A DNA stretch of 64,000 nt, from NCBI RefSeq assembly GCF_041956535.1, contig NW_027192192.1, positions 307,051 to 371,050 on the forward strand, given 5' to 3'. This stretch comes from Calcarisporiella thermophila CBS 279.70. Lineage: Eukaryota; Fungi; Calcarisporiellomycota. Positions 27,364 to 29,006 of this stretch are shown one piece after another. The translations under genes were made by a program, and so were the position numbers. Position 1 is the first letter of the stretch. The number at the start of each line of letters is the position of its first letter. The notes under the pieces are model-generated. The model saw nothing but the letters and a program-made list of their open reading frames with translations, was not told the DNA's origin and ran no database searches.

Positions 27364-28317
27364 CGCCTCTATCAAATAGGTGCGATACTCTGTAAAAATA
27401 TTGAGAATGGAAATATATATTTCTATTTACAATGCCATTTATTACTATATAATCATTTATTTTATTAAACTTGAAAATTTCTACCTGAACTCTTTAATAA
27501 TATATTTCCCTTTTATTTCACTTTATAATTTTCACTGCGTTTGGATCATGCCTCTCATAAACTCTCACCAGATAGATCACTCAGTTAAATATTTACAATG
27601 CTGGGCGATAATGAAAAGGCTACTTTCCCTTGGCTATATGCCGCTGGGACGCCCTGATAACTGAGATATCCAAACGTACATGTATTCTGGAGATTGCAAG
27701 TTAGTTGCCTTGGTATGCTCGAATAATTCGAAAAAAAAAAATAACGAAGGCTAGATTTCGCATTGTGTTATCGTTACGTGGTAACTCCGTACAATCTCAA
27801 TTCTATTGAAGGCCCTAGTATGCATTGACCACATTAGTTGTCATTCAAATAATACTTTGGCACGCTAGTATTTTAAATGAACGGGGCCAATACCCATCAC
27901 AGGCAAAACTTGGCCAGTGCTAAAAAACCATTGAGGGGAAATTTCGACTGGTAGGGGTGCAGGTACTGTTGCGCAGATAATGGCTCAAAGAAGAAGAAAT
28001 AAAATGAAAAAAGTGTATAGGGAAATGCAGATTGTTTGTATGTGCAGACCATTGCATGAAAAAGGGGGAATGTACGATCAATGCGGGTACGATCCATAGA
28101 TGCTGAAACGAACAAGTTTCAATTGGAATTTTTATTAGGAAGAATGTTGCGAGGATGGTATAACGGGGTATACTTCTATACTAAAATAACCCAAGAAGGT
28201 TCTACATGATTAACTCAATACGATTTAAGTGTTAGATAACAATGTTATATGAAAAAATATATTTGAGATGACTATGAAAACTACTAGGCTGAATTGTATT
28301 TATTTAATTTAGATATT

Positions 28318-28490
28318 TTTCTTTTGAGATTAAAGGATCTTTTATTGAAAAGTCTCCTATACAAGTTAAATGAAAGGATTATACACTCTCTACCATTGCT
28401 TACATGTATTGCTTGTTTTACTGATGTCTACCAATATCAAACTATTAACGAAGTAGCTTAATACTCGATTCCTAGAGTATGTCCAGCACT
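28318..28490 (-). mobile_element. Possible older, 5'-truncated retroposed fragment at the same target site as the SINE
   Basis: Bounded by ATTAAATTTAGATATT (28491-28506) and a 1-mismatch copy ATTTAATTTAGATATT (28302-28317); A-rich end (AAAAGAAA) on the minus strand. Confidence 0.4.
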
Positions 28491-28506
28491 ATTAAATTTA
28501 GATATT

Positions 28507-28841
28507 TTTTTTTTGATCAATCAATGGAAACTTTTATTTAATTTCCATATATTACATGAAGTTAATGTCAATGGACTTAACGAGATATAGGTCCTTGATC
28601 GATAGACTTTCAATCGATATGCGTGTATCGCAGTTGTCGTGAATAGCATGTACGTGAAACCGATGTAATCTTTTGTACTTATCGTAAGGGCGGTCTTTTT
28701 TTCAATAATCAAGACTCAGCTTCTGATCAAGTGGATAGCAGTCACAAACTAAGAGTAAGTGCTGGTGGGGGAAGTGGGATTCGAACCCACGCCGTTCACA
28801 TCGGCATCCCAGGGATAGTCCACTACACTAACCCTCCCCCC
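28507..28841 (-). mobile_element. tRNA-derived SINE-like retroposon with 16-bp TSD
   Basis: tRNA-like head 28841-28763 (A box TAGTGTAGTGG, B box GGTTCGAATCC, acceptor GGGGGGA/TTCCCCC, A-CCA); ~250-bp body; 3' hairpin 28524-28548; oligo-A tail; identical flanks ATTAAATTTAGATATT at 28491-28506 and 28842-28857. Confidence 0.8.
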
Positions 28842-28922
28842 ATTAAATTTAGATATTATTAATATTTCGACTGCGCCACATTTGCAAATACTAACATTAT
28901 TCTGTGAAACATTTTTTGTAGA

Positions 28923-29006
28923 GGTGATATGGTCGAGCGGTCTAAGACGTTAGACTCAAGTTCTAATCTGCGTAAGCAGGCGTGGGTTCGAATCCCACTG
29001 TCACCA
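28923..29006 (+). tRNA. tRNA-Leu (anticodon CAA), intronless
   Basis: Full cloverleaf: GGTGATA/TGTCACC-A, anticodon arm TTAGA-CTCAAGT-TCTAA, long variable arm, GTGGG-TTCGAAT-CCCAC; oligo-T terminator just downstream. Confidence 0.96.

Follow-up and report, generated by a model that had tools for sequence, protein, structure and literature searches.

The DNA analysed here, referred to throughout as the window, is a stretch of 64,000 nucleotides from the genome of the fungus Calcarisporiella thermophila CBS 279.70. Reading outward from a tRNA-Leu(CAA) gene, the window carries one copy of a target-site duplication (TSD), a 335-nt tRNA-derived SINE on the minus strand at 28507-28841 that we have named SINE-A, a second copy of the TSD, a fragment of a different SINE, termed SINE-B, and a third copy of the TSD (Table 1). 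The tRNA gene points away from SINE-A, such that the two are divergent, and its first base lies 81 nt from the 5' end of the SINE, with the near TSD edge at 65 nt. The other genes of the window are ordinary eukaryotic genes; the host Utp4 homologue reaches no more than 56-57% identity with proteins of Endogonales and 54% with those of Mortierellaceae.

Table 1. Features at the SINE-A insertion site of the window (window positions), followed by the tRNA gene clusters of the genome (contig positions).
Feature	Position	Strand	Evidence or remark
tRNA-Leu(CAA) gene, presumed integration landmark	28923-29006	+	ARAGORN; Rfam tRNA 60.4 bits; T6 run after gene
TSD copy 1, tRNA-proximal, adjoins SINE 5' end	28842-28857	.	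exact 16-mer ATTAAATTTAGATATT
Full-length SINE-A copy, 335 nt including one extra 5' G and A8	28507-28841	-	genome matches; TSD; 3.0% from family majority
tRNA-derived head, encoded CCA at end	28763-28840	-	Rfam tRNA-clan partial match at exactly the same coordinates
A box TAGTGTAGTGG	28820-28830	-	within tRNA-like head
B box GGTTCGAATCC, perfect	28777-28787	-	within tRNA-like head
SINE body, ~210 nt, unrelated to tRNA	28553-28762	-	without T4 run
3' module: hairpin, then TTGATTGATC, then A-tail	28507-28552	-	folds; matches LINE tails at 84-85%
Hairpin with 9-bp stem, loop has most of AATAAA	28524-28548	-	RNA folding
A-tail (A8)	28507-28514	-	3' end of SINE-A
TSD copy 2, between SINE-A tail and SINE-B fragment	28491-28506	.	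exact 16-mer ATTAAATTTAGATATT
SINE-B copy, 5'-truncated and internally deleted, own hairpin and A-rich tail	28318-28490	-	BLAST matches in >10 loci
TSD copy 3, 1 mismatch to 16-mer	28302-28317	.	window search
tRNA gene clusters	C8:936352-1028213; C10:204460-214457; C24:86478-89080; C25:432532-437740; C29:5704-150948		

A sequence-only reading of the window had described an intact tRNA-derived SINE at 28491-28857, and every feature it listed is found in place: the tRNA-like head with Pol III A and B boxes, which Rfam also matches to the tRNA clan, the terminal hairpin and the oligo-A tail. That reading had also seen no oligo-T terminator past the head, and we likewise find no T-run after the encoded CCA of the window copy. 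The perfect 16-bp TSD that it reported is exact at both flanks, and no chance copies of the 16-mer are expected (0 from 100 shuffles). Its length is less certain, however, given that the repeat opens with two A's that are indistinguishable from the A-tail, so that the TSD is better given as 14-16 bp. Within the head, the acceptor stem, the T arm and some of the D arm are retained while the anticodon arm is degenerate, and RNA folding returns a cloverleaf-like structure. The Rfam match of the head is no more than a partial one to the tRNA clan, and ARAGORN makes no tRNA call on 28763-28840. Right though it was on the SINE, the reading did not take in the tRNA-Leu(CAA) gene, the third TSD copy, the second insertion at the site, or the fixed position and orientation that we describe below.

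We searched the genome of C. thermophila CBS 279.70 (28.2 Mb in 116 contigs) for further copies of SINE-A. From 182 candidates, at least 40 full-length matches were recovered at 92-98% identity. A census with a 32-nt pattern for the head, allowing 3 mismatches at most, found 99 SINE-A heads, compared with 0 for the reversed-pattern control, and all 99 sites were taken as loci L001-L094 for the analyses that follow. The canonical tail lies 327-352 nt from the head in ∼74 of the 99; the rest are mostly cut by N stretches or carry variant tails. A TSD of at least 12 bp was scored in 58 copies (median 15 bp), and its sequence differs from site to site.

The sequence-only reading had proposed that the element was inserted by LINE target-primed reverse transcription, and had looked to dispersed copies, variable TSDs and a LINE with the same 3' end. 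The first two are as just described; as for the third, a LINE family has 3' ends that match the final ∼60 nt of SINE-A. Since the element is multi-copy, has TSDs that vary and ends in a LINE-matching tail, we conclude that it is a LINE-mobilised tRNA-derived SINE. The reading had also called the insertion young. Its perfect TSD agrees with this, but at 3.0% from the majority-rule SINE-A reference the window copy sits at the median of a family whose divergence, measured against the same reference, ranges from 1.2% upward. The window copy is thus a genuine and fairly young member of a tRNA-derived SINE family of ∼100 copies.

SINE-A is probably an undescribed family. Nothing matching it was found in Rfam or in the literature that we searched, and metagenome scans returned 0 matches to the SINE head and 0 to the shared tail. 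A comparison with 37 sampled anticodon types gave no convincing source tRNA for the head. Among the 71 complete copies, 65 have no T4 run (longest T run 3), and so Pol III could read through SINE-A; this lends indirect support to the proposal that the element may be transcribed by Pol III. tRNA-derived SINEs are already known from fungi, namely Mg-SINE, Foxy and AfuSINE2 (PMC5063351). Compared by description, SINE-A resembles these in its tRNA-related head with A and B boxes, its short TSDs and its LINE-like 3' end. To our knowledge, tRNA-gene targeting has been reported for none of the three.

The position of the window copy relative to tRNA-Leu(CAA) recurs across the family. Using ARAGORN to locate tRNA genes, 57 of the 99 heads have a tRNA gene whose first base is 76-110 bp away, with a median of 84 bp and an interquartile range of 81-86 bp, and for a further 13 heads there is a tRNA gene at 180-1278 bp. 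By our estimate the chance expectation is ∼0.1 of 99 sites, even given 1,500 tRNA genes. Orientation is divergent in 69 of the 70 heads with a tRNA neighbour, the one exception being an ARAGORN pseudo-call, and the neighbouring tRNA genes represent 33 anticodon types, so insertion is independent of tRNA identity. When introns were allowed, ARAGORN gave false tRNA genes spanning SINE heads, and these were left out. The median distance from the tRNA gene is 67.5 bp for the near edge of the TSD, a value that may move by 1-3 nt since the leading A's are ambiguous, and 84 bp for the far edge. The near edge is the site of the first nick of target-primed reverse transcription, on the tRNA-sense strand. 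An independent check that used Infernal coordinates only, on the 63 top-scoring Rfam tRNA genes of the genome, found a divergent SINE-A head 78-90 bp upstream of 11 of them. For annotation, this means that roughly one tRNA gene in 6 of an unbiased sample is preceded by SINE-A, whose head can itself be mis-called as a tRNA gene.

What, then, is being recognised at these sites? One explanation is that a LINE endonuclease reads some DNA sequence found by coincidence upstream of tRNA genes, for instance within the LTR-like repeats that begin 8-16 bp away from many of them, and it is true that many of the target sites fall inside a few LTR-like repeat families. Against this, both the TSDs and the flanks are unrelated between insertion sites, including the unique flank of the window, the nicks show no base motif apart from A-richness on the near side, and the spacing to the tRNA gene is the same with and without an LTR-like repeat. 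We therefore regard recognition of sequence as very unlikely, and conclude from the lack of a nick motif and the unrelated flanks that the landmark is a position, not a sequence.

For around 30 of the 99 heads, the 0.1-1.5 kb examined upstream contains no tRNA gene, and so the targeting may be strong without being absolute. Many of these heads adjoin N stretches, contig ends or other retro-tails, and some are in apparently unique or LTR-like DNA. An Rfam scan of 20 loci without an adjacent tRNA gene found no 5S, U6 or other Pol III gene. At one locus (L044:940-1480), a SINE-A head and a full-length SINE-B face each other head-to-head across 107 nt. From this single case, it may be that SINE heads, being Pol III promoters, can themselves act as landmarks.

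The arrangement in the window also records the order of events at the site. SINE-B is a second tRNA-derived SINE family, known in full length from L044 and L071, to which the window fragment was aligned. This fragment has the second and third TSD copies at its ends, and the presence of that third copy indicates that one site has been struck twice. The truncated SINE-B landed first, and SINE-A second, nearer to tRNA-Leu(CAA); the TSD copy that bears a mismatch is the outermost of the three. Such serial insertion is not peculiar to the window, since 12 of the 58 SINE-A copies with a scored TSD have at least 3 copies of that TSD in their locus. Some of the inserts in these stacks are no more than the terminal 15-40 nt of a LINE tail. 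Displaced SINE-A copies are more diverged than tRNA-adjacent ones, with medians of 4.8% and 3.0% respectively (n = 8 and 38, one-sided p = 0.011). A third tRNA-derived family, SINE-C, is ∼300 nt long (L052:753-1055; also in L042 and L065); its tail is the closest match to that of SINE-A, and a short motif just past the CCA is common to both. In one region (L101:1292-1503, the same region as L016), ∼130 nt are duplicated on either side of a 20-N scaffold gap, probably an assembly artefact inside a retroelement stack.

These observations bear on a second explanation, namely that SINEs insert nearly at random and survive mainly beside tRNA genes, with selection removing the others from a gene-dense genome. 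The flanks of tRNA genes are indeed known as safe havens (PMC5911963), and ∼30% of the copies have no tRNA gene in the sequence examined, as random insertion would allow. Selection, however, cannot yield an interquartile spacing of 5 bp, a 69:1 bias in orientation, or the exact reuse of two nick positions, and we consider this account very unlikely. That SINE-A has no mobility of its own, being a tRNA pseudogene with a long trailer or having been spread by segmental duplication or gene conversion along with a tRNA gene and flank, as the clustering of tRNA genes in this genome might suggest, can effectively be dismissed, given the 33 anticodon types among the neighbours, the A-tails, the 5' truncations, and the individual TSDs and flanks of the copies, whose differences had already refuted this reading.

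The 3' end of SINE-A points to a LINE partner. The last ∼60 nt of the element match two other types of tail at 84-85%, that of SINE-C and that of a LINE. This LINE has a 276-nt 3'UTR, present in at least 40 copies at 91-99% identity, the last ∼60 nt of which are 84% identical to the SINE-A tail. This LINE also occupies the same position as the SINEs. The order at L095 is tRNA-Gly, TSD, a copy of this LINE of ∼4.8 kb, TSD, SINE-A and TSD, with the same TSD occurring all three times, while at L096 another copy of it begins ∼73 nt from a tRNA-Met gene; both LINE copies are divergent to the tRNA gene. The L096 copy starts inside an endonuclease-like coding region, recognised by eye only (a stretch ending FLQETH), and a search with its 80-aa N-terminus found no match in Pfam, in PDB or by word search. 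No start codon is visible, and the copy is therefore probably 5'-truncated.

In the long LINE copies the ORFs read as N, as do parts of some SINE copies (for example L095:700-5173 and L051:1090-2101), and ORF listing turns such stretches into giant false ORFs. Evidence on the LINE proteins comes from unmasked 5'-truncated fragments in the stacks, which are not linked to the LINE with the SINE-like tail: their RT fragments score 160 bits to human L1 ORF2p compared with 87 bits to R2, and zf-RVT is found in 5 C-terminal fragments. The RT pieces are just 35-40% identical to one another, which indicates that several LINE families are present. Judged from coordinates alone, intact-looking LINE frames exist elsewhere in the genome (for example on contig C3). 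A common feature of five element families is the 3' module, comprising a hairpin of 7-9 bp with AAUAAA, located ∼9-17 nt before the A-tail. This shared module is likely to act in cis as the signal by which the SINEs use the machinery of the LINEs.

The LINE at L095 has a further peculiarity. Inside its TSD pair, the 5' end of the LINE is joined to a 98% copy of a tRNA-Asn locus (L095:5174-5395, minus strand). The source lies at C23:564399-564566, and the copied segment spans from 18 nt upstream of the tRNA to the T7 terminator. The junction looks like a template-switch chimera of pre-tRNA and LINE. We ruled out that tRNA-Asn is a regular part of the LINE 5' end, because the sequence is a copy of one particular locus.

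Our explanation for the SINE-A family as it appears in the genome, with its TSDs, its spacing and orientation, its indifference to tRNA identity, its serial strikes and its LINE-shared tail, is that SINE-A is mobilised in trans by position-specific LINEs, which read position and not DNA sequence at tRNA genes. We hold this to be very probably correct. In the mechanism that we propose, the A and B boxes of the SINE-A head would direct transcription of the element by RNA polymerase III, and an L1-like LINE protein would recognise the shared 3' module (the AAUAAA hairpin, TTGATTGATC and the oligo-A) in the transcript. The LINE protein would then copy the SINE RNA into the genome by target-primed reverse transcription, making a first nick ∼65-68 bp upstream of tRNA base 1 on the tRNA-sense strand, and a second ∼15 bp farther out from the tRNA gene. 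The resulting element would always stand head-to-head to the tRNA gene, with ∼84 bp between the gene and the element's 5' end and a duplication of ∼15 bp at its flanks. Later insertions would reuse both nick positions and push older ones outward, building ordered stacks whose members are parted by one repeated TSD. For the landmark itself, we infer, by analogy with TRE5-A of Dictyostelium, the complex of TFIIIB and TFIIIC on the tRNA gene.

The closest behavioural parallel is provided by the TRE5 elements (TRE5-A/B/C) of dictyostelid amoebae, non-LTR retrotransposons which insert 44-54 bp upstream of tRNA genes, beside any tRNA and in the opposite orientation, and by NLTR-B of Polysphondylium, whose tRNA targeting is similar; the ORF2 of both has endonuclease, RT and zinc finger domains (PMC5911963; PMC5006619). 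The ORF1 protein of TRE5-A binds TFIIIB subunits, and targeting requires an intact B box (PMC5911963). Like TRE5, the SINE-A/LINE system keeps a fixed upstream distance, inserts divergently, and does so independently of tRNA identity and local sequence. The two differ in that the 5' end of SINE-A is ∼84 bp from the tRNA gene, with the first nick at ∼65-68 bp, compared with 44-54 bp for TRE5; in that the host is a fungus; and in that one slot serves several families of LINE and no fewer than three of tRNA-derived SINEs, whereas no SINE partner is described for TRE5 in PMC5911963 or PMC5006619. The likeness is one of position and orientation behaviour, and is not a statement of homology.

A SINE following a target-specific LINE has a precedent in crocodilians, where SINEU takes on the target preference of the L1/Tx1-type LINE Tx1-Mar, and tandem SINEs sandwich a shared TSD (PMC4494074). 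SINE-A shares both of these characteristics, including the TSD sandwiched between tandem copies. The target of SINEU/Tx1-Mar, however, is a DNA sequence in a Mariner transposon and its heads derive from snRNA, whereas SINE-A has a tRNA head and is placed by position beside Pol III genes.

Targeting of tRNA genes by non-LTR elements is listed only for dictyostelids in the reviews PMC5911963 and PMC5006619, and our full-text literature search found no fungal case. We are inclined to believe, with rather more reserve than we attach to the mechanism, that a TRE5-like system has arisen independently in an early-diverging fungus, in which LINEs of several L1-like families, together with tRNA-derived SINEs of at least three families, insert at a fixed distance from Pol III-bound tRNA genes, in one orientation, beside Ty3-like LTR elements at the start site. 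If so, this would be the first position-specific consortium of non-LTR elements and SINEs outside the dictyostelids, and the first example of tRNA-derived SINEs homing to tRNA genes, a habit of non-LTR elements described until now only in social amoebae. Integration guided by the Pol III complex is a classic survival route for mobile elements in compact genomes, and for non-LTR elements our understanding of it rests almost wholly on Dictyostelium. A second, independent system in a fungus could inform how a protein landmark, rather than a DNA sequence, steers target-primed reverse transcription. With its many young copies, exact reuse of nicks, and SINE passengers that carry cis signals alone, it would offer a comparative handle on the mechanism, and the 335-nt SINE-A would be a natural minimal substrate for defining what the LINE protein recognises.

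A short motif, ATG-GCGCAGT, lies at 28870-28885 in the window, and recurs ∼25-30 nt from SINE heads in L004, L010, L015 and L035. In other loci it belongs to an LTR-like repeat; the window has the motif alone. We rejected an LTR remnant beside the window tRNA-Leu gene, as the rebuilt empty site matches no other locus, leaving the short likeness of the motif.

LTR retrotransposons that use tRNA genes as landmarks include Ty3 in yeast and DGLT-A in Dictyostelium, both of which are inserted by an integrase at the Pol III start site. SINE-A and its LINEs differ from these in using target-primed reverse transcription, 65-85 bp upstream. In C. thermophila, at least 26 of 70 sampled tRNA genes are preceded, at a distance of 8-16 nt, by the start of an LTR-like repeat; these repeats belong to several families, all beginning with TGTT (they are seen at L034, L013, L024, L040 and other loci), and the genome contains a Ty3/gypsy element with gag and PR-RT-RH-IN (ORFs at L097:1293-5859). 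There seems to be, besides the LINE/SINE slot, a second slot at the Pol III start site that is like that of Ty3 and DGLT-A. The tRNA genes themselves are strongly clustered in this genome, and several of the clusters hold identical copies.
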